From Neoechinorhynchus agilis (lineage: Eukaryota > Animalia > Acanthocephala), in contig JBMGUZ010000015.1 of the NCBI GenBank assembly GCA_051530055.1, forward strand, positions 1 through 49,290: DNA of 49,290 nucleotides. The letters are read 5' to 3'. Shown here piece by piece: positions 5,855-35,266 of this stretch. The notes under the pieces are model-generated. The model ran no database searches. It saw only the letters and a program-made list of their open reading frames with translations, and was not told the DNA's origin. The position numbers were made by a program, and so were the translations under genes. Positions within the stretch are counted from its first letter, which is position 1. Every line of letters starts with the position of its first letter.

Positions 5855-5935
5855 TCATATCAGCCGCCATTTATTTTCTTCAACAATTTTTCAATCAGTC
5901 TTTTGTGCCGAATATTTAAAGGATTCACACGAACT

Positions 5936-10319: not shown

Positions 10320-10810
10320 TGCATTTCGGGTCCCAAAAAGCACTATTGTTGTTGACTTTAGGCCTCAATGTTTAACTACTTAGAAAGTAAGGTACTAAAC
10401 TCGTCGTTTCCAACAGATCAATGAAAATGGACGTTTGCATTATTTCTAAGAATATCAAGTTGTAGTCCGTAATCTGTTGATTAAAATAGAAAGCCAAGTG
10501 GTACTTTAGCATTCTGCATAAACTTTATAAGATAATCTCCCGTGCAGTATAGGAAGTGCAAATTGATGCATTTCGGGTCCCAAAAAGCACTATTGTTGTT
10601 GCCAATAGGCCTCAATGTTTAACTACTTAGCAAGTAAGTAAGCTACTAAATTCATCGTTTCCCATAGATCTATGAAAATGGATGTTTGCATTATTTCTAA
10701 GAATATCGAGTTGTAGTCCGTAAGCCGTGATTAAAATAGAAATCCAAGTGGTACTTTAGCGTCCTGCATAAACTTTATAAGATGATTTCCCGTGCAGTAT
10801 AGGAAGTGCA
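10320..10810 (+). repeat. SatA, two monomers heading module copy 1
   Basis: Runs from tgcatttcggg to ggaagtgca; shares diagnostic variants with 34790-35266. Confidence 0.95.
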
Positions 10811-10954
10811 CCACGTGTTATTATTTAAAAAATCTCCGTGTATGACTGTAGTATTTTTTTTCGAATCGTATGATCGAAGATGATAGGGTGTCTATCGCCT
10901 TCAAACGATCCCGGACATTTTTCGCTATCTGGAACAACGGAGGTCGCGGTTTTG

Positions 10955-11120
10955 TTGAGTGCTGAGATGCGATCTTTGCGCGTGGACTCCATCGCGGATC
11001 AACCCGGCATTGCACTACAACAAAAACTGGTATAGTTAAAAAGTAAAGAGAAAAACTTGATTGAGTGCTGAGATGCGGTGCTCGCATTGAGGCCGTCGCG
11101 GATCAACGCTGCATCGTTGA
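10955..11120 (-). repeat. Degenerate inverted relic of SatB subunits
   Basis: ggactccatcgcggatcaacccggc (10984-11008) is the reverse complement of SatB gccgggttaatccgcgatggagtcc with 1 mismatch; ttgagtgctgagatgcg repeats at 10955 and 11061 (period 106). Confidence 0.6.
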
Positions 11121-11571
11121 AGTCTCAGAGTTTCAATCTCGTTTTTGACGGTGGGATTAATGCGCCTTTCTTTGCGAAATCGCTGTGTGCATTATGTCAG
11201 CGTATTTTAGTGAAATAAGATAATTTGTTGATAAGTTCGTTTACGTAGGATTCTCGATGGTACATCGAATTGATCACCGGTGCACTTTAATTGACCTGGT
11301 TTAGTTCATGAAGTTCTCAAAATGAAAATCTAATCATCAACCTGCAGCAAAATTACCGTTTTTCGCGCATGTAATTAAAGAGAAAACTGTCAATGAGGAA
11401 AATGATGCGAAGACCACCTACGACCTTTGTGAAATGTCGATTTAACTTCTAAATTCCGTAGTTGACCGTTTCAACGTGAATGAAAAAGCCGTTTCGTTTT
11501 TTCCGATTAAATGCACGACAGAATTTTAGGTTAAAAATTATTTTTTGTACAATTTTCTCCATTTATAGACG

Positions 11572-14344
11572 ATGGCTGGGCGCTCCTTGGTTGAATGCAT
11601 TAATGCATTGGAGATTGACAATGAAGCTTTAATCACTAACAATTCAGACGATGTAAGTATCTTTTTTAGAAGGATAAATCCTTTTGCGCTGTGAGTAGAG
11701 TGCATTTATAAACGCAAATCGAACCGGGATTGTGTTTGCAATCGATGGTGTTCAATCGAGTTCAAATCATATTGCTCTTTCATTTGACGCCTGTTCAACT
11801 TGTGTCCAAAGCATTATCCACGATGACGATCTCGTCGCTGTGTTGATCTTCGGAACAATCGATGAGCGGTTGAAGCGGATTGCTAGGTTGTGGCACCAAG
11901 CAGATGATATCGGAGACATTTTAATGAGTAACGACTTGGTCGATGGTGTACGGATCGTCTGTGATCTGCAGCAACCCAGTGCAGATATTGTACTGAAACT
12001 TGAACGATGTGCCAAACTTGTTGAGGTTGAGAATTTCGATCAAGCGATAGCTAAGTGCCCATTGAATGAGGTGTTATGGGAATCCACGAGGTCTATGTGG
12101 ATTAATTTATCTTTTAATCTTTTGGTATTGACTGGTTCATTCTTTGCCAATATAAATAACTAGGATAAATTAAAAAAATTGATGTTTCGCCGCTCTATAA
12201 CAACAAATTTTAAAATGATTTTGCATTTACTATACCAATCAAAAAATTTAAATGGAGTTATTGTTTAGGTCTAAAGCCGGTAAATGATTATTTATTAAAG
12301 ACGTTTCGAACCTCGTCGAGAACAAACTGATGATGAACCCTACGAGGTTCGAAACGTTTTTAATCGAAATAATCATTTCCCGCAAGTGTAGACTTCTAAA
12401 CAATAATTCCACTAATCAATATACCCCGGTACCTCCTCGCACATATCGACAAAAATTTAAATACTTTCAACGTTTTAATTATGATTTCGGCACTTTGATT
12501 TTTTGCGAGATTATCCTAGATATTTAATTCTCTCTTTAAACCACCGTTGATTCTTGCTTAAATGTGTATTGTCAACACGTAGATAATGCCCTTTTACGCA
12601 AATGATGGATAGATATAAAATCCTGAAAATAATCCTTGGAATTACTCAGGTTATATGTTTTCTTGGTGAGATATTTCAAATGTCTTCTTTTTTATCATGT
12701 ATATTAATATTTTGAAAGTATTCTAATGCTTTTCAGTCTTAATGACCTTTTTATTTATTACATCCACAAGGACTTCATACAAGAATATTTTCGCGTAGTC
12801 CAAAGCTGGCTCGAGTTAACACTTCTCGGCGGCGCATCATTATATTTACCGATAATCCCGACCCTTATAATAACGACCTCGATGGGCGGCGACAAGTCTT
12901 ACAGCGAGCGAAGGATCTATTTGACTCACATATTTGTATTGATGTAATCCCAACATCAAGTGGATACTTTGACTACAAACAGTTCCATCAACACCTCATG
13001 ATGTTGAATGATGAACAGATCGATGCAATTCAGACGAATAACTCGCCAAATCAAGTTTGCTGTGACCGGGTGAAAGCCTTTAAGCGACGTGTTCAGCGTC
13101 CCTTCTGTCGAGTTATTTTTCGAATCCTTGCAGGAACTAAGAAGCCATGCGAAATTCCACTTGTGGCTTATTCTTTAAAACAAGGAGTTTCTGTATTAAT
13201 TTGGGTATTAATCCGGAACTTCTTGGATATCGCGACGACAAGCGGCACCTTTGAAAATGAATGTGCATAGGCGGACAAATATTCCGGTGGAGTCTTGTTC
13301 AGAAATCCATCAAAAGGGTCGCAATGAAGAAGACGATTTTGTCGTTTTACCTTCGGAAATCGCTTATTGTATTAACCTAGCAGGAAAAAAGGCGGTGTTT
13401 GTTCCTGAGGAATTAGCTTCCATTCAATGCCAGATTGTGAAACGAGTGTCTTACATTTTTTAATTGTCCTAAAATCTTGTTCTCGCTCTGCTTTAGTTTC
13501 TCAACATCAATGCACGAGTGCTTTTATAGTCGAAATATGGTATTGCCGGAAGTAAAACTAATAAAAACAAGATATCCGAACAAAAAATTATTTAATTTGC
13601 TAATTATAGTCAGAATGATCATAGTCGTGGTACATTCAGCCAATTACTGTTTAAACCTATTTTTCTTATCTGTAATTGTTCCTCGTGTGGGATCAACATA
13701 ATAGTGCTACTATCAAAAGACACTGGTTTTTTAATGAAACACTTGACAAACCTAGTCAAGCTTCGTTGACCCTTATTGGATTTAAACCGCGGTCAAAACT
13801 AGATTATAGTCTGTACTTAAAACCTGGATACTTTATAACTGGTTGTAGGGAAAGTCGTACATTCTTAACGGCTCTTCAGCGAAGATGCATTGAACGATCA
13901 ATATTCGCTGTCGCAAGAATGAAGCTTCGTATTAATTCCCCCTGTTACTTTGTGGCCCTTGTTCCATCCAGAAATGAACCAGGATTCATCGTGCAAATAT
14001 TGCCATTCGCAGACGATTTCAGAGATCTGACCGATGTTTTGAAAGACGTTGCGATTGATGTACCCAATGATGATGTATTAGATTTGATGGGTTCGGTTAT
14101 ACGTAAATTAAGTTTCACTTTTGACCCAAAGCAGTTTCCGAATCCCCACATTGAATGTGTTCAGCGAGCCATAAGATTGATTGCACTCGACAAAGAAGAT
14201 AATGACAGTTTTGAAGATCGGTCAATGCCGAAAATCGATGAGAAGGTGGCTGGCCCGATTCTTGATAAATTGAAGACCCTAAGTGCGCCTTCTAGGAAAC
14301 GAAAAGAAGATAGTGAACAATCAAGAGCAAAGAAGAAGAAATAA
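11572..14344 (+). CDS. XRCC6: Ku70 (XRCC6), 5 exons: 11572-11652, 11699-12090, 12799-13184, 13243-13447, 13756-14344 (last two junctions less certain)
   Basis: vWA-domain matches: IVFAID, LVAVLIFGT, PLNEVLWES, RRRIIIFTDNPDP, RAKDL. Core-domain matches: LTLIGFKP, PCYFVALVP, PGFIVQILPFADD, FPNPHI. Introns 1 and 2 are phase-compatible GT-AG. Confidence 0.9.
12327..12358 (+). ncRNA. Minimal type-I hammerhead ribozyme motif (Penelope-type) in Ku70 intron 2
   Basis: CTGATGA-T, stem II GAACC/GGTTC, GAAACGTT with palindromic ACGT stem III, 3-bp stem I AAA/TTT; embedded in an inverted repeat at 12282-12378. Confidence 0.7.
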
Positions 14345-14435
14345 AATTGTGTAGTAATTCGTCTGGCGAAATCTCGACTAAATATATACTGTTGTTATCT
14401 TGGATTATTATCTTCGGGGGTCAAGTTCAATAATT

Positions 14436-14753
14436 TATTTCCGATATTTCACGTCGGATAATTCCGACATTATCAAGGTTTGTCACCTAAAAAACGAACA
14501 TGGTTATCATCGGACAACATGTTCATCAGACCCCGCCCTCGTTCCTTGGCTCGTTGTCCATTAGAACCTCTGAGCTAGAGCACCACTATGTTTTCAATGG
14601 TAATTTCAAACTGATACGATGATTTTATTACCTTCCATGAGTTGAACTAAGCAGCCTATTTCTATGGCTTCCATTATCAACCGATTCCGTAAATGTGGCT
14701 TTACGCTAGTCACATTAGCATGTCGGAATTATCCGGCGAAATATCGGAAATTA
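14436..14753. mobile_element. MITE-like element, ~320 bp, ~33-bp terminal inverted repeats
   Basis: atttccgatatttcacgtcggataattccgacat ... atgtcggaattatccggcgaaatatcggaaat; interior is non-coding. Confidence 0.55.
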
Positions 14754-15059
14754 GTGAACTTGTATCCCGGATGGCAAAACTAACAACAGAAAATATACTG
14801 TTGTTTTTTCAGATTTCAGTTTTTAAAGATATTAACTGCGTTTATGCAGATTCTCTCTCTAAGCCTTACTTAATTAAGGATCTTTATTTGTTCTTGTTGG
14901 AGGTTCATTGATAAATAATACGAATTCTTTGTAAACTTAAGTAACCTTAAAGGATGGCTGGCGCAGCCAGAACTTCATCGTTTGCACTCTATTAGTTAGG
15001 TTGTGTTTCAAGGAGATGAGTCCAAATTATCGGCACTGTGATCCGAAAATATACGCCAC

Positions 15060-15585
15060 TTTACGTACACTTCGGGTCTACCGATTTGTGTCGAATATCG
15101 TTGCCGGTGTGGAATGATCGTGGATCCACTGGGGAGACATGGTCTTGTTTGCAACAAATCAGGGGGGTCGTTTCTCACGGCATTCTGAATTGAACGACGT
15201 AATTTCGCGTGCCCTGAATACGATGAAGGTCCCAAACATTTTAGAGCCAAGAAACCTGTGCAGGCTAGATGGTCGTCGTCCGGATGGCGTCACCGTATTC
15301 CCGTGGCGAGAAGGCAAATGTCTTCTCCAGGAGGTTTGTGGTGCAGTCCCCAGGAGGAGCGGCTACTGCCGTGGAGGACCGAAAGGTGGCGAAATATAAA
15401 GAATTAAGTAGGTATCACGTTTTTGTACCCTTTTGAGTGGAGACTCTTGGTGCGCTCGGTAGCTGGACACTTAGATTTACGAAGGAGTTATCGAGTAGAC
15501 TCCAGGCCAATACAGGAAATACAAGAGCTGGTGCCTTCCTGCGCCAAAACATTGGTCTCGCGATCGGCACGCCTCTTCGCCTTTC
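15060..15585 (+). mobile_element. CRE-like non-LTR retrotransposon 3' fragment (zinc knuckle plus restriction-like endonuclease), decayed
   Basis: GLPIC..CRCG..VDPLGRHGLVC, RHSELNDVISRAL, DGRRPDGVTVFPWREGK, KVAKYKEL, VETLGA, AGAFLRQNIGLAI; frameshifts present. Confidence 0.85.
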
Positions 15586-15589
15586 ACAG

Positions 15590-17360
15590 GCCAGTTCTTC
15601 GCGCTGGTGACAGTTCTGAGGGGTCGTTGGTCAGCTCAATTAAAGATAGGGCCGTCTCCTTCGATCAACTCTTTTCAGCACAATTCGAGCTACCTATCGT
15701 GGGCCTACAGAAAACCCTACACACGGTAATTTTCCGGCTAGGTCCATATGGGAACGTGCCTCTTCGAAAATTGCGGATGGTGATGTCCGGGGAGCTGTTC
15801 GCATCCTTTCCTCCTCAGAAGTTTTTACCCAGGTTAACGAGGAAACTCTCAAAACCCTGAACCAAAAACATCCTCCATCGGAGGCACCAAAACTCCCAAC
15901 TTTTCCAATCGCTGCCTCGAAGTCTCCCTGCTCTGTAAAGGAACTCATTTCAGCGATATCTTCTTTTGCTAGTGGATCCGGTCATGGGCAAGCTGCCAAG
16001 ATCGGGGTTGAGCTCAATACCTCGAAGTATGAGCTGTCTGTGATGAATACAGAAAACGCTGTTAGTCAAATTGAGATCCATAATAGTTTTACGCAGCTAG
16101 CACCTAACATCAAAATAATCTCGCGCGCTCAACTGCCTCTTTTGGGTAGCTGCGTTTTTGATATAAATATACCCGAGGATATCGTCCAAATAGCGCCAAG
16201 AGTCGAATTGCTCTGCGTGTGTACGAAGGAACTTCCATCCCATTAGGCATTATTCTTGATAAAGAATGCCCTGTTCCGTCCGAAGTTGTTGTACAAATTG
16301 CGTACAGCGCATTCTTCAAACATCGACACTCCTTGGGGGAAATCGATGAGAGGTGTCTCGAAGGGATTTTAAATATTTAACTGTCGGATGAGGCATGGAG
16401 ACAAGCTTCCTTGCCTGTATCTTACGGCGGTTTGGGTATCCGTAAAACAGCCGATGTCGCAATTTCGGCCTTTTTAGCTTCCAATGAGGACAGCCGAAAG
16501 TTGGTCGAGAAATTGTTGGAAAAAGAGTTTTTACTTGATGAAAATTTTAAAGAGGCGGTCTTCGAATTTTGCCGCATTACGCAGTGCGATCAGGCTCCCT
16601 TGAGAGGCAGACAGACAGTTTGGGACAAACCTTTAATCACGCGAGTTCACGACTCAATGCTTTCCGACGCGCGTGATGAGATGACTCGAGCTCGATTGTA
16701 GGCGGTCTCTTCGAAGGAATCTGGTGCCTGGCTGAATGTCGTTCCGATTTCTTCTCTCGGAAATTTACTCACAGACGAAACAGTGAGGATCGCAGAGTCC
16801 TTACGACTTGGTCTCCCGATTTGGGTCCCACACTGCTGTCGTTGTGGAGCCCTTGTGGATACTACGGGTAGACACGGTATCGTCTGTCGCCAGTCCGGTG
16901 GCAGGTATGCTCGCCACGCCGAAATTAACTTGGTGATTAGTGACTCGATGGTCGAAGACCGGACTGGGAAACTGTGTTCCCGTGACTAAAAGGGAAATCC
17001 CTTCTCTGGGACGCCACTTGTGTGGACACCCTTGCCCTCTCCAATCTAAGATACTCCTCGCGATGTGAAGGAGGCGCTGCAATTGCCGCGGAGGAACGCA
17101 AGCGGAGGAATTAAGCCGAACTCTTGAAGGCACACCACTTCGTCCTTTTCGGCGTTGAGACGCTCGGAGCCTTCGTTGCTGAGGCCAAGAACTTCACGGC
17201 GGATCTGTCAAGGAAGATGAGGATCGCAACCGGAGATCCAAGAGCAGAAACGTTCTTACTGCAAAACATAGGTCTCGCGATCCAGCGCGGCAACGCTACA
17301 AGTGTTCTTACGACGATTCCGAGTGGGGGAAAGGATGGATCTGGTAAGTTTGTGAAATAG
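15590..17360 (+). mobile_element. CRE-like non-LTR retrotransposon, internally deleted (RT core missing), decayed
   Basis: GDVRGAVRILSS...KHP, SFASGSG, IGVELN, LPVSYGGLGIR, SGAWLNVVP, CRCG..RHG..CRQSGGRYARH, WDATCVDTLA, VETLGAF, LQNIGLAIQRGNA. Confidence 0.85.
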
Positions 17361-18430
17361 ACATGTCTTTCACTCTTTCCTCATTAATTATTGTTGACTA
17401 ATAACTAGTATGCCACACACACCAGTAGTCGATCCACCACTAGTTTTTCTCTCAAATAAATCTATGTATATACTTTATAATACGTATTGGGCTCTTTAAA
17501 AACAAAAATTAGCCACGTTTTTCTTTTGTCACATAAAGAAACCTTACTAAAGGAATTTACGGTAAATAAATTTCAGAAAGAGAGAATTTCCAGCGATCAA
17601 TACTGTTTCTTAAAAATGTAGAACCTTTATTTTGCGTTTATCTGAACTTCTAAGATGTAATCAATAATTTTTCCTGCTCATTAGGGCGCATCGATTTAGC
17701 AAGACTTCTGAGATCTGGTAAGCCATCCAAATTGCAGTTAAAATTGCAAACTTAAAATGTTCTAACACATGGATAACGATTTTAAATTGCAGCAATCTTA
17801 GGCTCGTTGTAGACATTGTACGATTGTTTCTTTTTATAGTGTTTGCTTGGACTTTCCAAGACTTTATTCCGGATCACATCTTGTGCAAAAGTTGCGAAAA
17901 ATGATTGCCCTGCAAAATTAAAGACTAGATTAAGCAAAGACAAAACTACGAGTGTGATACGTAGAAAACTTTGAAGCCTAATTTATTGGTTTTGTAGGTA
18001 TTACCAACAATTGGTTAACACCTAGTTCGTGACGGACATATGTGCATTATGGAGATGTGGTGACCATATCCCCGGTTTTTTATGACATTTTATTAGGACA
18101 TTTCGGGAGGAAGCCTCGCCTTATCAGTCACCTGAAAAGTTCCCGGATTATAATCACCACAAAGAATTTTCTCTTGATGATACAGGCATTATATTGATCG
18201 CTATAAAATGTAGAACGATTGTTCATTTTCACGCCATAAAATAATGTGACTCGTAGCAAGAGTTTATACCAAAGGCAGGATACAAAATTCCCATCGTTCT
18301 TGTAACGCTAACATTGACGTGAGTTCATGAAGGTGGTAGACGAGCTCCCTCGTTCTCGTAGATTCCTTTAATGACGCATATTTCCCATAGCGTCTACACA
18401 TTCTCTTTTTATCATACACTACTTTCATAC

Positions 18431-19816
18431 ATGGCACCAAAGCCATTTCGATCAATCCATATAACTCATAAAAGCTCGGAGCGATCATCACCGGACATTA
18501 GGTTAATGTCTCCGTCAAGTCCACGCCATATCAGTCGAGTCCAGGAAAAAGAAGAGCTTCAAACCCTGAATGATCGCCTTGCCTCGTATATTGAGCGAGT
18601 CAATAGGTTGGAGGCGGACAACGCTAAACTGAAGGCAGAGATCTCAAATTACCAAGAACGGCATTCACAAGATGGTAGTCGAGTGAACACTATTTATGAT
18701 GCTGAAATCCAGGAACTTCGCAAAACATTAGATGAGGTTTCAAAAGACCGAGCTCGATTGGCAATTGAGGCGGGAAAACACTCAAGTGAAGCGGTCAATG
18801 CTGCAAATAAATTGACAAAATGCGAAAAACAACTGAAGCAGCTGGAAGTTAGGTTGAGGAAATTCGAGGGCGAGAACGCTGATTTGAAGGCTAAGCAAGG
18901 TCGAATTTTGCTAGACGTCGGTCGTAAAACAGACGAAGTTGTAAACTTAAAATCTAATCTAAATGATGCTGAACGTCAGCTTTCTAAAATTAGACGCGAA
19001 CTTGAAGATGAAACTATGCTTAGGGTTGATCTCGGAAATCAGGTCAACTCTCTCAAAGAGGATGCACAATTCAAAGCTCAAATACGCAAAAAGCAAATTG
19101 ATGAGCTTTCGCATCAACGAAGGACGGAAGTTAAGCGAGTAGATGAACGAATAAAGCAAGAATACGACGGTAAATTTATTGCGGAACTTAACAAGATTAG
19201 AACGGAAACTGAGGCCAAAATAAGCGAGATGCGCGACGAGGTTGAGCAGGGCTACAATCGAAGACTAGTGGAAGCACAAGAATCGAGCAAACGACAAGCA
19301 GCAAGTATGTTGAATCTAAAAGAAGATCTACAGGCATTAAGGCTAAAAGTCAATACACTCATTGCAGAACGTCACGATTTGCGCGGCAAATGCACTGAAA
19401 TGGAGGAAAAAATCAGAGTTTTGGAAGATGAAATCGGAGATCGACAGCGAAAATTCGACGAACAATTGGGGTTGAGAGATGCAGAAATCAGTGAGTTGAA
19501 GAAGAAATGCAATGAAATGAATGCAGTGTATCAGGATTTATTGAATATGAAAGTGAGTCTTGACCGCGAGATTTCAGAATACGCAAAGCTGATCGAATCA
19601 GGAGAAGAACTATTGCACTTAAAGTCAAGAGCTCGTTTTCAAGAGATATTTATCACGACCTCCGCAAAAAGGAAAAAAATCGATCAACCATTTGCTGACA
19701 AAAGAACTAAATCATTGAACGAGAGCACTGGAGTAAGCGGTTTGGTAAGTACAACAATTGAGATAATTGATGAAGGTAGTGATGCGGGAACGTTTGTAAA
19801 ACATTCCAATAAATGA
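18431..19816 (+). CDS. Lam: Nuclear lamin, intronless; full rod and NLS, but stops at the start of the Ig-like tail domain and has no CaaX (open from 18371; 18431 is the likely start)
   Basis: SPSSPRHISRVQEKEELQTLNDRLASYIERV, RVDLGNQVNSLKED, YQDLLNMKVSLDREISEYAKLIE. EKEE to YAKL spans 345 aa, the long lamin-type rod. NLS KRKKID; ends IEIIDEGSDAGTFVKHSNK*. Confidence 0.9.
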   Translation: MAPKPFRSIHITHKSSERSSPDIRLMSPSSPRHISRVQEKEELQTLNDRLASYIERVNRLEADNAKLKAEISNYQERHSQDGSRVNTIYDAEIQELRKTLDEVSKDRARLAIEAGKHSSEAVNAANKLTKCEKQLKQLEVRLRKFEGENADLKAKQGRILLDVGRKTDEVVNLKSNLNDAERQLSKIRRELEDETMLRVDLGNQVNSLKEDAQFKAQIRKKQIDELSHQRRTEVKRVDERIKQEYDGKFIAELNKIRTETEAKISEMRDEVEQGYNRRLVEAQESSKRQAASMLNLKEDLQALRLKVNTLIAERHDLRGKCTEMEEKIRVLEDEIGDRQRKFDEQLGLRDAEISELKKKCNEMNAVYQDLLNMKVSLDREISEYAKLIESGEELLHLKSRARFQEIFITTSAKRKKIDQPFADKRTKSLNESTGVSGLVSTTIEIIDEGSDAGTFVKHSNK

Positions 19817-19936
19817 CCGAACAGTGCAACCCACATTACAGCAAAAAAATTACAAAGCAATCTAAGCTGATTGTCACTCCGGCGATTTTAAATAAAAACC
19901 TGGCCAAAAGCTTTGATCTCATATCTCGACCAAATC

Positions 19937-20460
19937 TTACCAACATTTACACAACACCTCTGGATCACTCAGTTGCCGTCCTGCTGTAACGGTCGAAAGG
20001 ACGGATGCAGTGTTACCTCGTAACACAGCCCGACTTATGTTTTGTAGGAGGAATGCTCCTGCCCTCGGATCGCCAGTGATTCGTCTGAGTCTCTTAGACA
20101 ATTGCTTGAAGCGGTCCTGCGCCGTGGTACCAAACGATCTGAGTGCCTCGACGACGTCCCGGTATTTTGTCTTTTTGCGGACCGCAGCGGCGCTGGAAAG
20201 TTGTTCGTATACCATTGTTCATGAAGTCATAGGAAGCTCAGGATCCCAACCCACGCATTAATTTAATATCTGGTCGCGTGAGTCTCAGGTCCGACGTAAC
20301 TTGGTCTTTGCTTCCCATTATCCATGGCAAAACGTGGAGTTTAGACAACGGTGGGAAGCATCGGTTGCAGCGGTCGCCGAAGTCCCGGTCTATCGGGGTC
20401 CGCCGTTTTGTAGCCTCCGTGTGGCATAGCCTTCGTCCGCCGATTCAGGATGTATCGCTG
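19937..20460 (-). mobile_element. RLE-clade non-LTR 3' fragment (CRE-like tail; upstream CxxC..H and RPD motifs of NeSL/R2 style)
   Basis: DRCNRC..LHVL, RPDI, TMVYE..AA..KKTKY, TGDPRAGAFLLQNISRAVLRGNTASVL; the tail is an inverted relative of 21484-21640. Confidence 0.7.
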
Positions 20461-20640
20461 TTGAGGACTTTTACCCGAGCCCCTTTAGCCTACTAGTCCT
20501 TGGGGTTTCTAAGAGACCTACATAGCAACTGTGACGGCATAGGAGATTTTACTTCTCCGGCCGCTATAGCTCTGTTAACCCCTAAGGTTAGCGTGTTCCA
20601 GGTGTCACTACGAGGAAACGGGGTCTAATTTCTGACATCC

Positions 20641-21655: not shown

Positions 21656-21719
21656 ATGTTTGTAAATAGCTTTTTATTGAAAATTAATCTCTTAAGAGAT
21701 TATTGTTACTTTAAGCGAG

Positions 21720-26475: not shown

Positions 26476-26610
26476 ATCGTAACTTATAAATATTCCCGTG
26501 TTTTCAGAAGAGTAAAGTATAAAAACGGACGTCCACTAAACTTAAAATTAATGAACTTTTTCAGAATAGACCAGCTTTGGGCTTCTTTGGCCCTCGAAAT
26601 ACCTCAGATG

Positions 26611-26845
26611 TGTACTTCCAATTTTGAGATTATCTTATAAAGTTTTTGCAGAATGCTAAAGTACCACTTGGATTTCTAGTTTAATCAACAACTTACGGAC
26701 TACAACTCGATATTCTTAGAAATAATGCAAACGTCCATTTTCATTGATCTATTGGAAACGATGAGTTTAGTACCTTACTTTCTAAGTAGTTAAACATTGA
26801 GGCCTATGGGCCACAACAAAAGTGCTTTTTGGGACACGAAATGCA
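26611..26845 (-). repeat. SatA, single monomer heading module copy 2
   Basis: Begins tgtacttcc and ends gaaatgca; reverse orientation relative to 1-3026. Confidence 0.9.
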
Positions 26846-27050
26846 TCCGTCAGGAAATTGGTTTCGGAAGTAACAACAAAAGCATGGGCGTTAACGAGTA
26901 ATGTAAAGTAATTAAAAGTAATGGGTTCTTTGTTTAGTTCATTAAAGCCTTTGAAAATCAAGGATTTTTAAGTACTTTAATTATAATTAATCTGTTTGAT
27001 TAGTGATGCCTATCTGCATTACATCAATGTCGGCTTCTTGATCTCGCGAT

Positions 27051-27130
27051 ATGATTGGTTGCACAAATTTATTGAGTGTAGTGAATCGCGCTGATTGGTT
27101 GCGCAACGCACTGTGGGAGCCTATTTATCA
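27051..27130 (+). promoter_or_regulatory. Putative promoter of ORF540: two reverse CCAAT boxes plus a TATA-like tatttat
   Basis: TGATTGGTT at 27052 and 27092 (40 bp apart). Both ATTGG cores persist in the diverged upstream region of the relic copy near 41385-41425. Confidence 0.35.
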
Positions 27131-27336
27131 TACCATTGAACCCGAATTGTATACATCGCTAATATCTTGGCATATCGTACTAACGACCTAAACAGCAACG
27201 TTCTTAAACTCAACTTTCTACATCGGGTCATTACTATAATCTACTGATATTTAACGATCTGATCGCTTCCTTAAACGAACATCTATTCAACGGCAACAAA
27301 CGCGATCACCTTTGCAAATCATTTTAACTTGCACAA

Positions 27337-28959
27337 ATGTCGGACAAAAGACCCCAATTGAGAATCGATCCAAGAACTGGGGAATACTACATTCCTAGTT
27401 ACCTACGAAGCGATGGAACTTGGACAGAAAGGATCGTCTTCCGACCGGCCAGAATTAACAATGAGCAACAGCGCTCAAATAATACTATTAGCTCAAATGC
27501 CACTATAAATGAAAATTTAAATCATGACTCGCAGCAAAGATCAAACCGAACCAGGAGTGTTCCAAGACCGAATCAAATTAACTATGCAAATAGAAATTCT
27601 CGTGGATCGGCACCTCTCGCTCGCTATCAACCTGATCGAAGCAAAAATGAACTTTCGAGGAGCAACAGGGCAACATACTCGGTATTTCGGTCCGGACACC
27701 AAAACAAAAATTCTGGAAATAGTGGCACAAATGTAGAAGGTGCAAATTATCAAAATCGTGCCAGAAGCGTACAGAGAGCTCTTCAATTAAATTCGCCTCG
27801 CGGAAATGGGCACGAAGAAGAGTCCACTTCAAGATTTCAAACTGCGACACTTAATAGTGCTATAAACACAGCGGGACACTTCAACGACTCAGGGAGCCAA
27901 AGGGCTCAATTCGTCCAGAATCACCAAAATCCCACGCTACAACAACCACAAACAACAACCAATACTGCTATCGGCCAATCGATCAATTTCGGCGGCATAC
28001 AAAATGTTAACATGATTGGTGGCTTCCCGGCCCAACGATTCACCCAATTACCTTTTGGACAAACAATACAGCCAATGCCTCAACTTATCGCCAATATGCA
28101 GGCATTATCTTTGGGGAATCAAGTTGGACAAATTTATCCATTAAATCAACCCAATGCGGCTTATGGATTAGGGTGCGGTGCAACCGGTGTTAATCAATTT
28201 CCTTCGGGATTTCTGCTGCCACATCAACTACAAAGGATCCCAAATACATTTAATGCACCCAATCACACCTTTGAGGCGGATAAACCAATTGATGAGGGAG
28301 AAGCTTTAAAAAACCAGCCGAAAAAAGATCATCTTCTCTCGACTAAACTATATATCAACCGGAAAAACGGCGACCATGAGGAAAAGGTCCCAGTCATTGT
28401 GGAATTGAGCATCCGCGCCGACGACCAAACAAACAGTGAACTTCGAAAATATACAAAGGGCGGAATTAAGAATGCTTCTTTGCGGCCACGACATCGAGAT
28501 AATTCAAATATTCCCAGTTATTTATGGACTTATCTGCGTCCCGCTCAAAGGGATTACATAAAAAACAACAAAGTTGAAGGAGAGCCCGGCGATATAGAAG
28601 ATATCGAAGACGTTGTCTTTGCGTTGGAACGTGAGGAAGAGATGCCGCCGATTCCGGAAAAATTTACTATTGTTATCCAAAAGCCCGAAAAGGAGCAGAA
28701 AATTCCTGAATGGTTTACCTGCCACAACGACGAACAATGGCAGGATATCGGCGATGAAACCTTTATGGAAGAGTTTCTAATGGGCGATGATGATATGGAG
28801 ATCTTAAAATTGAATGCCGATACACTGAACACTAATAACAAAGACATGGCCTTTATTATGAAGTCATTGGCCAATAGTAAAGTGCACATTGAAGCTGTCA
28901 CCATTGTAAATGATAAAGAAGATAAAGACAGTGAAAATAATTCAGATGAACAGAACTGA
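27337..28959 (+). CDS. Module ORF540 copy 2
   Basis: 540 aa, 7 amino-acid differences from copy 1. Confidence 0.8.
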   Translation: MSDKRPQLRIDPRTGEYYIPSYLRSDGTWTERIVFRPARINNEQQRSNNTISSNATINENLNHDSQQRSNRTRSVPRPNQINYANRNSRGSAPLARYQPDRSKNELSRSNRATYSVFRSGHQNKNSGNSGTNVEGANYQNRARSVQRALQLNSPRGNGHEEESTSRFQTATLNSAINTAGHFNDSGSQRAQFVQNHQNPTLQQPQTTTNTAIGQSINFGGIQNVNMIGGFPAQRFTQLPFGQTIQPMPQLIANMQALSLGNQVGQIYPLNQPNAAYGLGCGATGVNQFPSGFLLPHQLQRIPNTFNAPNHTFEADKPIDEGEALKNQPKKDHLLSTKLYINRKNGDHEEKVPVIVELSIRADDQTNSELRKYTKGGIKNASLRPRHRDNSNIPSYLWTYLRPAQRDYIKNNKVEGEPGDIEDIEDVVFALEREEEMPPIPEKFTIVIQKPEKEQKIPEWFTCHNDEQWQDIGDETFMEEFLMGDDDMEILKLNADTLNTNNKDMAFIMKSLANSKVHIEAVTIVNDKEDKDSENNSDEQN

Positions 28960-29995
28960 AGAAATACGGAGGCTAAATAAAGAAGAAACGATTAACTCGG
29001 CAAGAAAATAAACCAGGATGCTCAAAATGGGAATATCGAAATTTGCGAAAATGAAAAGTTTATAAAAAATGAAGAGTGATCGAACAAACTGTCACTGTTT
29101 TTTGATGTGCTTAAATAAAAAAATTAAAATCAAGTGTTTCAAATGGGCATTGATTTTCACTTGTCGCCTATTAAGCAAATAATTTTAGGGGTATTTGTGG
29201 GCACTTAAGATTTAAAAAATGATTTATTATTCTGGAGCGTTAAAAATTTATACAAGTTTGTTTTGTTTAGGATTTAGCGAAAAAATAGGAATATTTATTG
29301 AATAAAATGGATTAAAATAAATATTTACTTACAGATATTGGGAAGACTAAAAAAGGTTAAAAATACATAGCTTCAAATTTAAAAACTCTCGAGTGTTATT
29401 TCATAAGCAATTGTGATCACCGCATAAATCAAAGGATGAACGAATTTGTGTTTCGGAAAGCCTTTCATTTCCAATTTTTTTTCAAAACATAATTATGTTA
29501 AATGGAATTTAAAGAGAGAGAACAAGTAACATTTTCTTCACATCGGGGATGTATATTTTTTGAAGCTTCTGGTCAGTTATTTTTTGAAACATATCATTGG
29601 CGAAATAACAGCTATCAAAACTGTCAGGATTCATAGTTATCCACCAGCAACTTTTTGTGAGCCTGAAATCAAATTACAGAGTAACAAATCATTCCATGAC
29701 AAAGAATGTTTTCAACATATTCTAAATGAAAAAATGTCTTCAAATTAAAAAGAGTAAAGACAAAAACCTTTTACCTTGGTGCAACAAATAAGACATTGAA
29801 CGGGATTATTTTTAAAGTACTTTGAGTAATTGCTGAATTGCGAAGTGGACATTTGTCTTATGATTTTGGTCAATTCCTGGTATTATTGTTGTCCAGCATT
29901 AAAATCCTGAAAAAATTAATATGAGTTCTATAGAAAACACAATAATAAATATTTTTAAAGCATCATAAGACGAATAGAAGCAAACTAATTTTAAG

Positions 29996-30304
29996 TTGCT
30001 GATATTATTTTTGTCAGCTATTGTTCAGAAACAAAACAAAGAAAACGGGGAACTTGACAATCTTATTAAGGACGTAGCAGCCAAAATTAAAGTAACGCCT
30101 GGCATGGAAAAAGGTAAAAATACCGATGATAAATCTCATACAAAGTCCGGTGTTCACTCTAAGTTTGATGTTGAGATTGAAGAGCAGTCAAAAAGTTCGA
30201 TAAAAACGAAATCTAAACTTAGTTTTGAAGACGGGAGCTGTAAAGAAATTTCAAGAAAGAGGCTGTCATCTTCCATTCGAGGTAAGGAGAAAACAAAAAT
30301 TTAG
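29996..30304 (+). CDS. Module ORF102 copy 2 (probable exon 29996-30281)
   Basis: aattttaag| acceptor at 29995; phase-1 donor g|gtaagg at 30282. Confidence 0.5.
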   Translation: MLILFLSAIVQKQNKENGELDNLIKDVAAKIKVTPGMEKGKNTDDKSHTKSGVHSKFDVEIEEQSKSSIKTKSKLSFEDGSCKEISRKRLSSSIRGKEKTKI

Positions 30305-30398
30305 CGAACGGATTCAACACCTCTCCGTCAGAGGCTTTTGATCACTATGTACTGTGAGCACAAAGTTATGAATTTTGATTTAGTAAGGAGCATCCTTA

Positions 30399-31277
30399 AT
30401 GAAATTCGAAATTCTTCAATTCGGATTGATAGATGTTCTTGGAGAGATGTTCGACAACAAAGATAATGCTCCACTCAACAAACTCTTAAACCAAGTTGGT
30501 TTGAAGATCAAGGAGGCTTTTGATCAAAAACGATTTAAAGAACGACGAGCGACGAAACCCAAATTAAATAAAACAAAAGAATTAGAACCCGAAATATCAG
30601 GTACTGGTTCTAGTGATAGGAATTCTAATGCAATTTCGGACAAAGAAACAGAATCGCCGAAGAGTATCAATAGCGATAAAAAAGGAGAAATGGGACTTCG
30701 TAACGTCGAAAACGTTCACAGTCAACAGATTTCAGAATCCAAACAATTGATGCCGCCTTCTCTTTTAACTAAGGAGATTAAATTATTAAAGTCTTTGTTG
30801 GATTCTCAATACGCAACGAAAATCTTCGAACTGGTGGACGATGTACTTTCCGAGATTTCGGAATTAGCGATGACCGCGGATCAAATCAAAGATTCCGATC
30901 TCATAGCCATTCTCCATAACATGGCCAGCAACGAGGAAAACGAACCGCTAATCGACATTATCGATGAAATCGGAAAAAAGATCGTGGGAATCTTTAATCG
31001 GCAACCTACAGAAATGTCCAATACTACGACGGAAAATAAATCAGGATCACGATTGAAAGACAAATCACCGAATGAATCCACTTCAAAAAGAAAATCATCA
31101 AAGCCTTCAGTTGATATGAACTTGAGTACCAAGGAACTCTGTGATCGTTTAAAAAGCATCTTGGACGAGAAGTTCACTGTGCGGAACCACGCGATGCCAA
31201 AGCGGATACTCAGCGCGATGATTAAACGTGAAATAGCGTTGAGTGAAATTCGGAACTACAATTTGCATCCTAACTAA
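30399..31277 (+). CDS. Module ORF292 copy 2 (probable exon from 30388)
   Basis: Intron 30282-30387 would join ORF102 in frame (SSIR-G-ASLMKFEIL); duplicated helical repeat. Confidence 0.65.
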   Translation: MKFEILQFGLIDVLGEMFDNKDNAPLNKLLNQVGLKIKEAFDQKRFKERRATKPKLNKTKELEPEISGTGSSDRNSNAISDKETESPKSINSDKKGEMGLRNVENVHSQQISESKQLMPPSLLTKEIKLLKSLLDSQYATKIFELVDDVLSEISELAMTADQIKDSDLIAILHNMASNEENEPLIDIIDEIGKKIVGIFNRQPTEMSNTTTENKSGSRLKDKSPNESTSKRKSSKPSVDMNLSTKELCDRLKSILDEKFTVRNHAMPKRILSAMIKREIALSEIRNYNLHPN

Positions 31278-31358
31278 AGTTCGTGTGAATCCTTTAAATA
31301 TTCGGCACAAAAGACTGATTGAAAAATTGTTGAAGAAAATAAATGGCGGCTGATATGA

Positions 31359-31745
31359 ATGAAAAAATTTAAATCTCGAAAACGAATAGTGGTCCTGAGA
31401 AATAAATCTGAAGGAAAAATGTTGGCGACGGAAACAACGGAGCAGCAGAAAACGAGAGCAGAATTCATGGGGAAATTTGAAGGAAAGACAAATATCAGAT
31501 CTAACGAGGATAAAAACGAAGCTAAGACGGACATTTCTGATTTCACTTCCGAGGGTTCAACCGGTTTCGAAACCGATTATTCGAACATCAATAACAACTT
31601 TATTTATAAAAGTACGATCTATGTTCAACTGGAATTTTCGTTACCGATGGTTTTAAAAATAACGTGGAGTGTACAGCATCGAGTTGGCTACCCAACATTT
31701 AATGTAGTTGAAATCCAGCAGGGAAACCTAGAGCGCCCCTTTTAG
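31359..31745 (+). CDS. Module ORF128 copy 2
   Basis: Open in both copies; no domain recognised. Confidence 0.35.
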   Translation: MKKFKSRKRIVVLRNKSEGKMLATETTEQQKTRAEFMGKFEGKTNIRSNEDKNEAKTDISDFTSEGSTGFETDYSNINNNFIYKSTIYVQLEFSLPMVLKITWSVQHRVGYPTFNVVEIQQGNLERPF

Positions 31746-32750
31746 ACTCATAAAGTCTTGATTAAAATCGTTAATAATTTTCTCGCTGTACATTGCATTC
31801 CCCCCGCAATCTATCTTTCTCTCAAAGAATATGGCATTGCGCCCGCTGTTCCTGGATTTGAGTGAAATACACAGGCTGCAGGTCGAATTCGCTTATTTTT
31901 GTCTTAATATTATTTGATAGGATGTTTTGTTGTGGAAACATTAAAGGTAAGAAAGTTTCACTTAACCACTTTCATCTCTTGAGGGTTTAGGTGACTCTTT
32001 CAACTTTACTGCAAATTCGCTTACGAGAAACAATCCCTTCCCCAACGTTATCCCCTATCTGCCCCAACAACCGGCTTAAGAATCAACTCTTTTCTATTGG
32101 CGAAATGCCCTTAAATTTTTCTATCATATGAATAAATCAGGCTCCAATATCTACTTTTTAGTTGTCCACCGTCACGCGTAGTTTCCTATTTTGCTCCATC
32201 AAATTGTAAATGTCTCTCCAAGTTTTCCAATTTTATATCATTATCCCCTTCCACCTTCCATGGTACGACTAACCGACTCTCTTTGAGTCCTGTTCGAGAA
32301 AGTGTACGGCTAATCCTGAAATTGACGAAGATGATCATTGGAACGCTGATTGATATAAAATTCGTTTCAAAAATTCAATTAACATTACAGGTAATCGGAA
32401 TCTTCTTGAATGATTCATTATTGAATTTCTAAACATACTCCACAATACCGTGTTTTTTTAACACATTTAGCGATTGTATCTCCAAAGCTAGAATGAGACT
32501 ACTAAATCTTCTTATGAATTTTAACTCTTCCCTGTTTCTGAGAGCTCATAAAAGATGCTAAACTTACAGGTCATGACATGCTGAAATACGTTTGATTACT
32601 TAATCTAGCGATTCAGCCGTTTTATTCCCGGTTACTCTTCCTTCCATACATACCGCGAGGTCCGCCCAGGAAGATGGTCTCAATCTACGAACGGCAATCT
32701 TTCACATCGGCGAAACCCCGATCGAGAATTCATCGCAATCCACTTTTCAG

Positions 32751-33622
32751 CTCCTGGCTCCTTTCCTCTTCATCTTGGTGATTGATTGGGTAATGAGATG
32801 GGCACTATCGAATGATGAAGATGGATTTCTTCGGTTGAGGAAAAGAGGTCGCAGGTATCCTGAGATACACGCCTCCTACATGGCATATGCCGACGACATC
32901 ATGTTGATGTCCTCAACAGTCGAAGGAGCTCAACGCATGCTAAATAGACTGTGCGAGAGGGCGAATATGATTGGTATGACCATCAACTCGAAAAAGACGA
33001 TTCCGCATGTCGCGCATACAGTCCCTGGCGAAGGGCCGAATGGCGTTGAGCAATTAAAACAGATAGAGCGGTATGTCTATCTGGGAGCTGTCGTTCCTGA
33101 GGTGAGTGCGGATGTCAGCCGATGGAGAGCTATAGCTTGGAGAGCAATGGGGCAACTTAAGCCACTGTTTGACAGCGAGTCTTTGCCAGACGAACTCCGT
33201 TCCAAGCTGTTCAGGACTCTAATTGAGAGCATTCTCTACTACAATGCAGAGACCTGGACACTGTCACCAACGGCGACGATGAAGTTGGACCAAAATCATT
33301 CATCTCTCTTACGTGCGGCGTTCAAGCTCAGATGGTCAGTAAAGTGACCAACAAAGCACTGTATAAGGGAGCCGGAGTCCAACCGCCCAGTAAATATTTG
33401 CGCCACAGACGACTGCAGTTCACGGGCAATATAATTCGGTCCGAGGCATCTTGCCCACAGGTCGTGCAAGAGTTCCTTTTCTGGAAGCCAACGACATTGT
33501 ATCGTAAAGGCAAAGGGAACTGTCGTGCATACGATGACCTGATTTTAAGAGACGCGAATTGCCCGCATAACAGGACTGCTGTCGTGTATTTTAGATCCCT
33601 TGCGGAGTCTAATTCTATTTGA
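32751..33622 (+). pseudogene. 5'-truncated RTE-like RT 3' part (module copy 2)
   Basis: LAPFLFILVIDW, YADD, YVYLG, YNAETWTL; same frameshift as copy 1. Confidence 0.85.
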
Positions 33623-33640
33623 CGGGCTTATACCTACGGT

Positions 33641-34180
33641 GCAACGTAAATGGCATTAGAGAATTCACCATTGCTGGTATCTATCGCCCTCCTGCCTCTC
33701 GTCCTGAGTCCTCTTTACATAAACTGGTTTCCATGATGGAACTCATAAACTCTGCAAATTTACACCATTTCTAAATTGCAGGGGACTTCAATGATCTATT
33801 TCTTCCTCTACCATTCTCCGAGTTGCGTCAACTTATTAATTTCCCAACTCGTCTTGACGCTCACCTCGACAAAGTGTTCACAAATATCAACGCCCACTAT
33901 TCCGCCCTTAAACTCCCTCCCCCACACGCGAACTCTGATCACTCTTTTGCCTTTATCACTCCCTCAACCCCACCTCAGCGTACTAAATCTCCCCGTTTAC
34001 CCGTCTGGAATAAACGTGAACATCACACCCAAAATTTTATAAAATTGTTTAACTCTAACATCCACACGTCCCACTGATAAAACAAATGACCCTTCCTTGG
34101 CAACGTCCTCCCTAACCTTAATCATAGAAAATTCCCTAACCACGACAATTCCAAAGAAATTCAATAGAATCTCCAACCTT
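33641..34180 (+). pseudogene. CR1/L2-type AP endonuclease fragment (module copy 2)
   Basis: IAGIYRPP...*IAGDFND...QLINFPTRLDAHLDKVFTN...NSDH. Confidence 0.75.
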
Positions 34181-35266
34181 GACGAGTTCAGTACCTAACT
34201 TGCTTGCCAAGTAGTTAAACATTGAGGCCTATAGGCAACAACAATAGTGCTTTTTGGGACACGAAATGCATCAATATTCATTTCCTATACTGCCCAGGAG
34301 ATTATCTTATAAAGTTTATGCAGAATGCCAAAGTGCCACTTGGATTTCTATTTTAATCAACAGCTTACGGACTACAACTCGATATTCTTGGAAATAACGC
34401 AAAGGTCCATTTTCATTGATCTATAGGAAACGACGAGTTTAGTACCTAACTTACTTGATAAGTAGTTAAATATTGAGGCCTATTGGCAACAACAATAGTG
34501 CTTTTTTGGACACGAAATGCATCAATATGCACTTCCTATACTGCACGGGAGATTATCTTATAAAGTTTATGCAGAATGGTAAAGTACCACTTGGATTTCT
34601 ATTTTAATCAACAACTTACGGACTACAACTCTATATTCTTAGAAATAATGCAAAGGTCCATTTTCATTGATCTATGGGAAACGACGAGTTTGTTACCTTA
34701 CTTACTTGCTAAGTAGTTAAACATTGAGGCCTATAGGCAACAACAGTGCTTTTTGGGACACGAAATGCATCAATATTCACTTCCTATACTGCACGGGAAT
34801 TTATCGTATAAAGTTTATGCAGGACGCTAAAGTACCACTTGGATTTCTATTTTAATCACGGCTTACGGACTACAACTCGATATTCTTAGAAATAATGCAA
34901 ACATCCATTTTCATAGATCTATGGGAAACGATGAATTTAGTAGCTTACTTACTTGCTAAGTAGTTAAACATTGAGGCCTATTGGCAACAACAATAGTGCT
35001 TTTTGGGACCCGAAATGCATCAATTTGCACTTCCTATACTGCACGGGAGATTATCTTATAAAGTTTATGCAGAATGCTAAAGTACCACTTGGCTTTCTAT
35101 TTTAATCAACAGATTACGGACTACAACTTGATATTCTTAGAAATAATGCAAACGTCCATTTTCATTGATCTGTTGGAAACGACGAGTTTAGTACCTTACT
35201 TTCTAAGTAGTTAAACATTGAGGCCTAAAGTCAACAACAATAGTGCTTTTTGGGACCCGAAATGCA
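34181..35266 (-). repeat. SatA, partial monomer plus ~4 monomers between module copies 2 and 3
   Basis: Begins mid-monomer at gacgagtt and ends gaaatgca immediately before the module start tccgtcaggaaattgg. Confidence 0.95.

Follow-up and report, generated by a model that had tools for sequence, protein, structure and literature searches.

A gene-carrying 7.33-kb unit beside a young satellite in Neoechinorhynchus agilis is probably a locally amplified segmental duplicon

The genome of Neoechinorhynchus agilis contains a 7.33-kb unit bracketed by a 251-bp tandem repeat, here termed SatA. This module is probably a locally amplified segmental duplicon, in which satellite-mediated unequal exchange and inverted duplications have amplified a lineage-specific gene, ORF540. 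The analysis covered a 49,290-nt contig (C15, JBMGUZ010000015.1; hereafter the window) and the whole 46-Mb assembly of this species. An initial annotation of the window had preferred a non-autonomous LTR-like or otherwise mobile element and named satellite-driven segmental duplication as the alternative. The shared junctions, the variable arrays, and a tail paralog that reads through its junction favor the alternative; most of the defining LTR features were looked for and not found, and the module does not establish a new class of LTR-like or satellite-capped transposon. The locus offers a small, clean example of how local duplication, both tandem and inverted, may use a young satellite beside a gene as its substrate and thereby amplify a species-specific gene. 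Acanthocephala, the host group, is one in which repeats are almost unstudied.

The window holds an inverted full copy (A), a direct full copy (B), and a 2.5-kb partial copy (C) of the unit (Table 1). The starts of B and C lie 8421 bp apart, which confirms the repeat unit of ~8.4 kb described earlier, the unit itself being 7.33 kb. The inverted arm of A, including both of its head monomers, is 99% complementary to positions 34778-37384. Overall, the inverted arms are ~8 kb long, ~99% identical, and enclose a unique spacer of 15.8 kb. The three copies diverge from one another by 1.0-1.3%, and their monomer counts and flanks also differ.

Table 1. Coordinates of the unit copies, SatA arrays, junction features, and spacer genes in the window
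Feature	Positions	Strand	Remarks
SatA array, ~12 monomers	35-3026	-	Reaches contig start; meets unit A tail at monomer position 156
Unit copy A	3029-10317	-	Full, inverted; 98% identical to B
ORF540 in A	8206-9828	-	Intact
SatA at unit A head	10318-10810	-	Two whole monomers (2.0)
Spacer	10811-26610		15.8 kb, between copies A and B
Junction A patch	10811-10957		CC plus a 145-nt block also at C1:4174188-4174368 (95-100% identical)
Ku70 gene part	13676-14344		In spacer
Intermediate-filament/lamin-like ORF	18371-19816		In spacer
AK6-like fragment	21720-22100	-	In spacer
207-bp satellite	23777-26475		In spacer
Degenerate SatA-like edge	26581-26625	+	~70% identical; last 30 nt of a monomer plus aberrant first 15 nt of the next
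SatA at unit B head	26626-26847	+	Single monomer (positions 22-246)
Unit copy B	26848-34180	+	Full, 7333 bp
PBS-like motif TGGTTTCGGAAGT	26859-26871	+	13 nt past the CA; repeated after 35268
ORF540 in B	27337-28959	+	Lineage-specific gene without Pfam domain
Retroelement piece	32755-33648	+	894 bp, RVT_1 match; dispersed
Unit tail	33649-34180	+	Older paralog at C1:1630380-1632943
SatA array, 4.3 monomers	34181-35268	+	Between B and C; starts at monomer position 156, ends at 246
Unit copy C	35269-37808	+	Partial, first 2.5 kb
ORF540 in C	35758-37380	+	Intact
Older copy of ORF540 upstream region and 5' end	41360-42365	+	~80% identical

Elsewhere in the assembly, copies of the unit were found only on C1 between 1.70 and 1.75 Mb and on contig C55, which resembles C1, so that the module occupies one chromosomal neighborhood and two small unplaced contigs. 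On C1, the order is SatA (14.4 monomers), u1, SatA (6.3 monomers), and u2, all inside ~45 kb, and on C15 the tandem pair reads B, SatA (4.3 monomers), C. Inverted copies are also present on C1 (u2 versus u3), and this pair is 99.93% identical, with identity ending at the SatA border. Contig C55 is collinear with C1:1702663-1714038 at 97-99% identity. Partial copies stop at unit positions 2554, 2791, and 2892, and tail fragments start at 6324. Identity of the unit heads is 98.7-99.0% within C15, 99.1-100% within C1 and C55, and 97.2-98.1% between them. Copies thus cluster by locus (~99% identical inside a locus, 97-98% across loci), and gene conversion or recent local copying would maintain this likeness. 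The tree signals are mixed, as the head monomers of A and C are identical, yet the unit tree places A weakly with B. The conflict suggests conversion, which makes the order of events harder to read.

SatA is a young satellite that, apart from partial relics, is found only beside the unit. The assembly (46 Mb) contains eight SatA arrays with ~97 monomers in total on C15, C55, and C1:1.707-1.749 Mb, and none of them lacks the unit. The variation in SatA number noted by the initial annotation was borne out, with 12, 2, ~1, and 4.3 monomers counted on C15 and 1 to 42 between units genome-wide. C55 has 15.2 monomers where C1 has 14.4, and the tail junctions are different too, which hints at polymorphism between these sequences. 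The unit-adjacent monomer at A is 100% identical to its counterpart preceding C, and the head monomer of B is 92-94% identical to other head-adjacent monomers. Elsewhere, SatA survives only as partial relics (78-91% identical). These solo pieces cover monomer positions 21-213, have no TG/CA ends, and include no copies flanked by target-site duplications (TSDs), for which a search had been proposed. Solo pieces adjoin a LINE C-terminal ORF; an origin of SatA as a LINE 3' end was rejected, as other copies of that LINE family stop ~120 nt short of the SatA-like part.

All eight SatA arrays end at monomer position 246 where they join the unit head, and this uniformity indicates that the head junctions are identical by descent. 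At the other end, the position-156 tail junction is common to three copies (A, B, and u1 on C1), and it is shared by tandem units spaced by 4.3, 6.3, and 14.4 monomers. Other downstream arrays start at position 92 (C1:1707433) or 181 (C55), and the array edge toward non-unit DNA at C1:1749241 lies at position 221. A breakpoint shared across SatA/unique junctions had been put forward as a check, and the junctions proved to be scattered over the monomer. The junctions at 10810 and 26611, for which an identical breakpoint with unrelated flanking DNA had been claimed, do contain the reported strings. At B, however, the sequence closely matches other monomers only from 26626 (monomer position 22) onward; the preceding stretch, 26611-26625, is aberrant and has a deletion of 6 nt, and 26581-26610 can still be aligned in phase with the final 30 nt of a monomer. 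The score of this alignment is 9, whereas random genomic 30-mers average -3.3, and 4 in 5000 of them do as well. The B edge is still monomer-like, and with the third edge at 221 the claim of a common breakpoint falls. Of the module heads, said to carry whole monomers (two and one), that of A has two, and that of B has a single monomer covering positions 22-246. A common ancestry of the B and C1:1749241 edges, both at ~221, was considered and rejected, the flanks being unrelated.

At junction A, the stretch from the flank to the unit head comprises exactly two whole monomers, and with the inverted match of seven of eight nucleotides described below this is nominally unusual (~0.5% for a fixed phase). 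Adjoining it is the patch with the 145-nt block that recurs on C1, where the copy runs on as TTCACTTT, a 7/8 match to the SatA monomer start. This arrangement fits ~7-nt microhomology or templated insertion, and the exact two-monomer head is explained only by microhomology. The sequence at C1:4.17 Mb was also considered as a proto-SatA beyond the shared block; similarity ends after 8 nt, and the idea was discarded.

Older relatives of both ends reveal what the unit was before it met the satellite. The tail paralog on C1 (81-84% identical) reads through the junction into non-satellite DNA, and only GA is shared at the tail/SatA break (2-nt microhomology). Because this paralog runs past the break, the tail-to-SatA join is an illegitimate junction. 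No SatA lies upstream of the older ORF540 paralog at 41360-42365. Together, these two relatives mark the unit as ordinary DNA that once continued past the junction. Within the older 5' copy, a conversion patch is suggested by the opening 272 nt of the ORF, which match B at 98.9% identity. The 894-bp retroelement piece has at least 30 genomic copies (93-96% identical), is missing from the older tail paralog, and is probably a truncated non-LTR element. The unit also holds a second ORF cluster and a piece of another repeat.

The earlier description of the module as gene-carrying was upheld: ORF540 is open in six of seven copies, with non-synonymous changes rarer than synonymous ones. The pN/pS ratio is 0.22-0.41 in 13 of 14 informative pairs and 0.81 for B versus C, and ORF540 thus appears to be kept open by purifying selection. 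Pfam searches with ORF540 and its N-terminus returned neither a Mago-binding nor any other domain at E values up to 10. Its sole relative beyond the duplicon is an annotated N. agilis paralog with 56% identity, and ORF540 belongs to a species-specific family. A multi-copy family of this kind will confuse gene counts and expression estimates.

The following course of events would account for these observations. Two one-off joins, one linking the unit head to SatA position 246 and the other linking the unit tail to position 156, may have bracketed a 7.3-kb mosaic of ordinary DNA with the young 251-bp satellite, and all copies would have inherited these joins. Arrays in direct orientation on both sides would then permit unequal crossing-over, which is taken to have produced the tandem units and would explain the changing monomer number between them. 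Inverted copies (A versus B/C on C15; u2 versus u3 on C1) could derive from inverted duplication via break repair or template switching, a process that fits the microhomology and the 145-nt patch from elsewhere at junction A. Positions 92 and 181, seen at some tail-to-SatA junctions, may reflect later deletions. The net outcome would be amplification of a species-specific gene. A wider version, in which satellite arrays are not passive and breaks or stalled forks at young ones recurrently seed inverted and tandem duplications that bracket gene blocks and amplify lineage-specific genes like ORF540, this locus being one case of a genome-wide process, is a speculation that we consider rather improbable.

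The LTR-like reading rested in part on the monomer ends. In the phase set by junction A, the monomer opens with TGCACTTC, and GAAATGCA lies 7 nt ahead of the next monomer start. The inverted match between these motifs is present in many monomers, and monomer variants disrupt it. The monomer so defined spans 244 of the 251 nt in each period, with a TCAATAT linker between its CA and the next TG, and shuffled monomers contain a terminal match of this quality in 1.4 phases on average. Furthermore, the true divergence point at the unit head lies 2 nt beyond the CA. The proposed tRNA-Leu-type primer-binding site was also confirmed only in part: the motif exists, begins with TGG, and is offset from the CA by 13 nt, but a complementary tRNA gene was not found. 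A genome-wide pattern search for a T-loop followed by a 3' end complementary to the motif, with ARAGORN applied to the sites, yielded no match at zero or one mismatch. At up to three mismatches, 185 matches were obtained against 124 in a reversed control, an excess that is partly due to one dispersed repeat. A near-identical sequence of this repeat accounts for 14 of the 31 two-mismatch matches, and ARAGORN recognized no tRNA at the other 17. None of the best 63 RF00005 tRNA genes overlaps the pattern matches listed, and Rfam and ARAGORN searches of the window detected nothing.

That SatA is the LTR of a tRNA-primed non-autonomous element, which carries host genes and also expands as a satellite, is scarcely credible on this evidence. 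The inverted match in the junction A phase, the two whole monomers heading copy A, and the TGG-initiated 13-mer after the last monomer speak for it. Against it, upstream SatA ends at 246 and downstream SatA is never complete, beginning at 156, 92, or 181, so that two direct LTRs of the same extent are lacking, and the number of putative LTRs ranges from 1 to 42. No TSD is shared among the flanks at 10811, 26610, and 37809, that is, at the A, B, or C end, and junction B is unclean. A polypurine tract is absent before downstream SatA, where the sequence reads ...AATTCAATAGAATCTCCAACCTT without a purine run. The unit contains no gag or pol, the sole Pfam match among ORFs of at least 90 aa being the RVT_1 domain in the dispersed retroelement fragment, and no autonomous partner with SatA as its LTR occurs in the assembly. 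Scattered junctions, a lack of TSD-flanked copies and of tRNA complementarity, and copies confined to one neighborhood and two small contigs are largely the observations that the initial annotation had named as refuting its own proposal.

Other explanations concern how the duplicon spread and how its ends were set. Extrachromosomal circles commonly originate from satellites, and a circle of unit plus SatA, excised between SatA arrays and replicating or re-entering by homologous recombination, predicts that unit-SatA junctions are shared, that SatA number varies, and that copies cluster locally. Unequal exchange and circle excision with re-entry would leave the same sequence outcome and cannot be told apart from sequence alone. 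The inverted copies and the junction A patch nevertheless require another process, and no copy sits in an unrelated SatA array, as every array has the unit; we regard circles as unlikely. A partial assembly artefact, in which extra or inverted copies were built from alleles of the pool or from collapsed and expanded repeats, is quite unlikely. Some 50 worms were pooled for this MaSuRCA/Flye hybrid assembly, which was subsequently treated with purge_dups, C15 and C55 are small unplaced contigs, the latter collinear with C1, and the nearly identical inverted pair on C1 stops at a SatA border. In the case of an early bdelloid rotifer assembly, the palindromes described were reportedly later blamed on assembly error. 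Some copies or junctions could therefore be haplotype variants or mis-joins, given the pooled assembly and the unplaced 49-kb contig with satellite ends. However, the differences among A, B, and C, with synonymous exceeding non-synonymous changes in ORF540, are unlike duplicated reads or polishing errors, monomer counts and flanks differ among copies, the spacer has single-copy genes, and the junctions are sharp with microhomology. A break or join hotspot at the monomer linker (GCATC-AATAT-TGCAC), where a nuclease with structure or sequence specificity would cut and so set the module ends, is highly improbable. Four of seven independent junction types do fall in the arc from 221 to 22 (the head at 246, A at 1, C1:1749241 at 221, and B at ~221/22). 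This arc was picked post hoc, and the binomial p of ~0.04 precedes any correction for that choice; once it is allowed for, the hotspot is not significant. The remaining three are found at 92, 156, and 181, and junction A is explained by microhomology. A hairpin or cruciform at the linker was dropped, being weak (-4.3 kcal/mol, z -1.4) and absent from neighboring monomers.

As a segmental duplicon, the module most resembles the satellite-associated segmental duplications generated by NAHR, such as pericentromeric duplicons and macrosatellite-like units. It shares with them a gene segment bracketed by direct tandem repeats, tandem copies, variable repeat counts, junctions by descent, local clusters, and homogenized copies. 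The N. agilis module differs in its very low copy number (three units per locus), in its young satellite (~97 monomers, only beside this unit), and in its host, an acanthocephalan with a compact genome of 46 Mb, from which satellites were not previously described. Inverted duplications of the MMBIR/FoSTeS type with a spacer are comparable in their ~8-kb arms and in one junction with ~7-nt microhomology and a templated patch; here, however, the mechanism is inferred from that one junction, and the other arm edge is degenerate satellite rather than a second clean breakpoint. In Tribolium castaneum, TCAST transposon-like elements lie scattered near many genes, with defined terminal inverted repeats and TSDs of 3 bp (PMC3411249), and the long direct terminal repeats of pDv in Drosophila virilis are described as resembling a satellite (cited in PMC3411249). 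In the N. agilis module, as in these elements, a larger repeated unit with non-satellite DNA carries a satellite monomer at its end. In contrast to TCAST elements, the N. agilis unit has no TSDs, complete second terminal repeat, dispersal, or transposase or gag-pol partner. The likeness to LTR retrotransposons, LARD/TRIM elements, and solo LTRs is superficial (the TG...CA-like phase, the 7/8 match, and the TGG-initiated motif), and most of their defining features are missing from the unit.

The spacer between the inverted copies carries, besides the genes and the satellite listed in Table 1, fragments of transposable elements. Its Ku and intermediate-filament segments are single-copy at the DNA level, which makes C15 more than a mere haplotig of C1. 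The 99%-identical inverted arms flank the only Ku70 copy together with other single-copy genes, and are potential substrates for inversion or mis-assembly.

The Neoechinorhynchus agilis assembly comprises 46.2 Mb in 102 contigs, three of them major, and was built as a MaSuRCA/Flye hybrid from about 50 pooled worms, followed by Hi-C scaffolding; satellites are absent from the text of the genome paper (PMC12690905). Contig C15, whose 49,290 bp make up the whole window, is unplaced, and its module structure, consisting of the 251-bp satellite SatA and copies A, B and C of a 7.33-kb gene-carrying unit, is provisional because the assembly derives from pooled worms. The spacer between A and B also contains TE fragments and a 207-bp satellite. 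Its Ku and intermediate-filament (IF) segments have no second close copy genome-wide, which makes C15 a separate locus rather than a mere haplotig.

Features of contig C15, with strand and basis of assignment
Feature	Position	Strand	Basis
SatA, 251-bp period, ~12 copies, reaching contig start	35-3026	-	
Unit A, full	3029-10317	-	
SatA, 2.0 copies	10318-10810	-	
Spacer, 15.8 kb	10811-26610	.	
Ku70 gene part, in spacer	13676-14344		Pfam
Intermediate-filament/lamin-like ORF, in spacer	18371-19816		Pfam
AK6-like fragment, in spacer	21720-22100		Pfam
SatA, one monomer	26611/26626-26847	+	
Unit B, full	26848-34180	+	
SatA, 4.3 copies	34181-35268	+	
Unit C, first 2.5 kb only	35269-37808	+	
Mosaic	37809-42672	.	
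163-bp satellite	42933-49290	.	

The initial annotation read the SatA monomer as the LTR of a gene-carrying element. Its observations were largely right: the coordinates and quoted junction strings agree with the sequence, B and C are spaced 8.4 kb apart, and the number of SatA monomers does differ between units (12, 2, 1, and 4.3 on C15). The LTR interpretation is wrong. With position 1 of the monomer set at TGCACTTCC, the 3' end of each of the eight SatA arrays lies at position 246, where it meets the unit head (...GAAATGCATC followed by CGTCAGG...), a join that is a single event inherited by all copies. The 5' array edges abut the unit tail at position 156 (A, B, and u1, a unit copy on contig C1), 92 (C1:1707433), or 181 (contig C55), and non-unit DNA at position 1 (A, 10810), approximately 221 in degenerate form (B), or 221 (C1:1749241). 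Instead of the shared breakpoint that had been expected, the junctions are thus scattered over the monomer. The arc from position 221 to 22 holds four of the seven junction types, but it was picked post hoc and is not significant.

Nor do the two junctions on C15 break at the same nucleotide, as had been proposed. At the B edge, BLAST similarity to other monomers begins at 26626 (position 22), and 26611-26625 is an aberrant form of positions 1-21 from which 6 nt are deleted. Just 5' of 26611, 30 nt align, anchored and in register, with the last 30 nt of the monomer at a score of 9, which is reached by 4 of 5000 random 30-mers of this genome (mean -3.3, sd 3.2). The pattern resembles a degenerate array edge, and 26611 is not a clean break. 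The same test found no monomer-end similarity in the flank of A. At junction A, the spacer opens with CC and a 145-nt block (10813-10957), 147 nt in all; the block recurs at C1:4174188-4174368 with 95-100% identity, 37 extra nt in the C1 copy, and different flanking DNA on both C1 sides. It is confined to these two genomic places and on C15 coincides with the breakpoint of inverted copy A. The bases after the C1 block, TTCACTTT, match the SatA start variant TTCACTTC at 7/8 positions, and past these 8 nt the C1:4.17-Mb continuation has no similarity to SatA. A short patch common to another locus combined with about 7 nt of microhomology is characteristic of break repair or template switching and not of an element terminus, and it accounts for the break at the monomer "start".

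Other features that would be expected of an LTR were examined individually. SatA downstream of the unit is 5'-truncated in every case, and neither TSDs at the module flanks nor a polypurine tract before the downstream SatA were found. The TG...CA ends with a 7/8 inverted repeat are real as a match, but only if a 7-nt linker is omitted, and the match is lost in some monomers. Shuffled monomers show such a match at 1.4 phases on average, and the hairpin is weak (z -1.4, +0.6, and -0.7 in three monomers). The motif taken for a tRNA-type primer-binding site lies 13 nt away from CA. A genome-wide pattern search for a tRNA T-loop with the complementary 3' end gave no match at 0-1 mismatches and 31 at two mismatches, of which 14 are one near-identical dispersed-repeat sequence; ARAGORN detected no tRNA at the other 17, and none of the best 63 RF00005 tRNA genes overlaps the pattern matches listed. 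Three solo SatA-like sequences (C35:18526, C1:18416425, and C1:18435863) lie in a locally triplicated segment (C1:18.42/18.44 Mb, C35) adjoining but outside a LINE 3' end. They are 78-90% identical to positions 21-213 with a 24-nt gap, and are partial, without the TG/CA ends. Together with a 53-nt piece on C2, they may be progenitors or relics of the satellite. At C1:18437846-18438324, a long simple repeat rich in C/G reads as poly-Pro/poly-Gly in several frames.

Satellite-driven segmental duplication, the fallback of the initial annotation, is consistent with all tests. It fits the junctions common by descent, the tandem units whose monomer numbers vary, the local clustering of copies, the paralogs that read through, and the microhomology/patch junction at the inverted copy. 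The unit tail has an older copy (C1:1630380-1632943, 81-84% identical), which lacks the retroelement insertion at the unit's insertion position and continues from ...CCAACCGTGA into GAAACCTGG..., where in the unit CCAACC(T/G)TGA is followed by CGAGTT (SatA position 157). The older copy reads past the breakpoint; the unit is thus ordinary DNA in which a break was fused to SatA through 2-nt microhomology. For ORF540, the lineage-specific gene in the unit, an older copy of the 5' region lies at 41360-42365 (~80% identical), and no SatA was found upstream of it. In this copy the first 272 nt of the ORF (41664-41934) match the amplified gene at 98.9% identity, which looks like a gene-conversion patch. 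The tandem units may have arisen by unequal exchange or by circle excision and re-entry, which are inseparable from sequence alone.

Assembly-wide, SatA and the unit are restricted to C15, C55 (18.9 kb), and C1:1.70-1.75 Mb. The C1 order is tail fragment, 14.4 SatA monomers, u1, 6.3 monomers, partial u2, a 13.4-kb spacer, inverted partial u3, and 41.8 monomers. C55 is collinear with C1:1702663-1714038 (97-99% identity), with 15.2 versus 14.4 monomers and the tail-to-SatA junction at position 181 versus 92; a haplotype of the roughly 50-worm pool that was left uncollapsed, or else a very recent or close paralog, is the probable explanation. The sole dispersed part of the unit is an RT-bearing 894-bp retroelement fragment (32755-33648; at least 30 copies, 93-96% identity). 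Over the first 2.5 kb of the unit, identity is 98.7-99.0% among the three C15 copies, 99.1-100% among the C1/C55 copies, and 97.2-98.1% between these groups, which points to local copying or conversion rather than a transposition burst. The head-adjacent monomer is identical in A and C and only 92% alike in B, whereas in the unit tree A clusters, weakly, with B, a discordance that suggests conversion. Copies u2 (C1:1719702-1722491) and u3 (C1:1735968-1738756) form a 2.79-kb inverted pair with 99.93% identity that ends exactly at the SatA border; the adjoining arrays are only ~90% alike.

ORF540 (27337-28959 in B) is a member of a species-specific gene family. Six of its seven copies are intact (u1 carries a frameshift), and pN/pS is 0.22-0.41 in 13 of 14 informative pairs, with 0.81 for B versus C. 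No Pfam domain, including a Mago-binding domain, was found even at permissive thresholds, and a word-index protein search gave no relatives outside N. agilis. The annotated paralog ACOME3_000175 (C1:1105642-1107129) is intact with 496 aa and 56% identity, and a distinct 229-bp tandem array (at least 6.8 copies) comes directly after it. Several pseudogene pieces (including C1:1516389-1518023 and C1:1119081-1119832) and weak N-terminal relatives in open frames of 578-580 aa (C2:2.59-3.90 Mb) were also detected.

Between its 99% inverted arms, satellite-rich C15 holds the apparently sole copy of Ku70, the IF ORF, and the AK6-like fragment. The IF ORF encodes 481 aa and looks intronless; its paralogs on C1 are 71% identical. 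The 207-bp satellite (23777-26475) comprises 13 copies and also shows a dimer periodicity of 413 bp. The 163-bp satellite has 39 copies and extends off the contig end, with relatives of 83-87% identity at C2:12935583-12937266.
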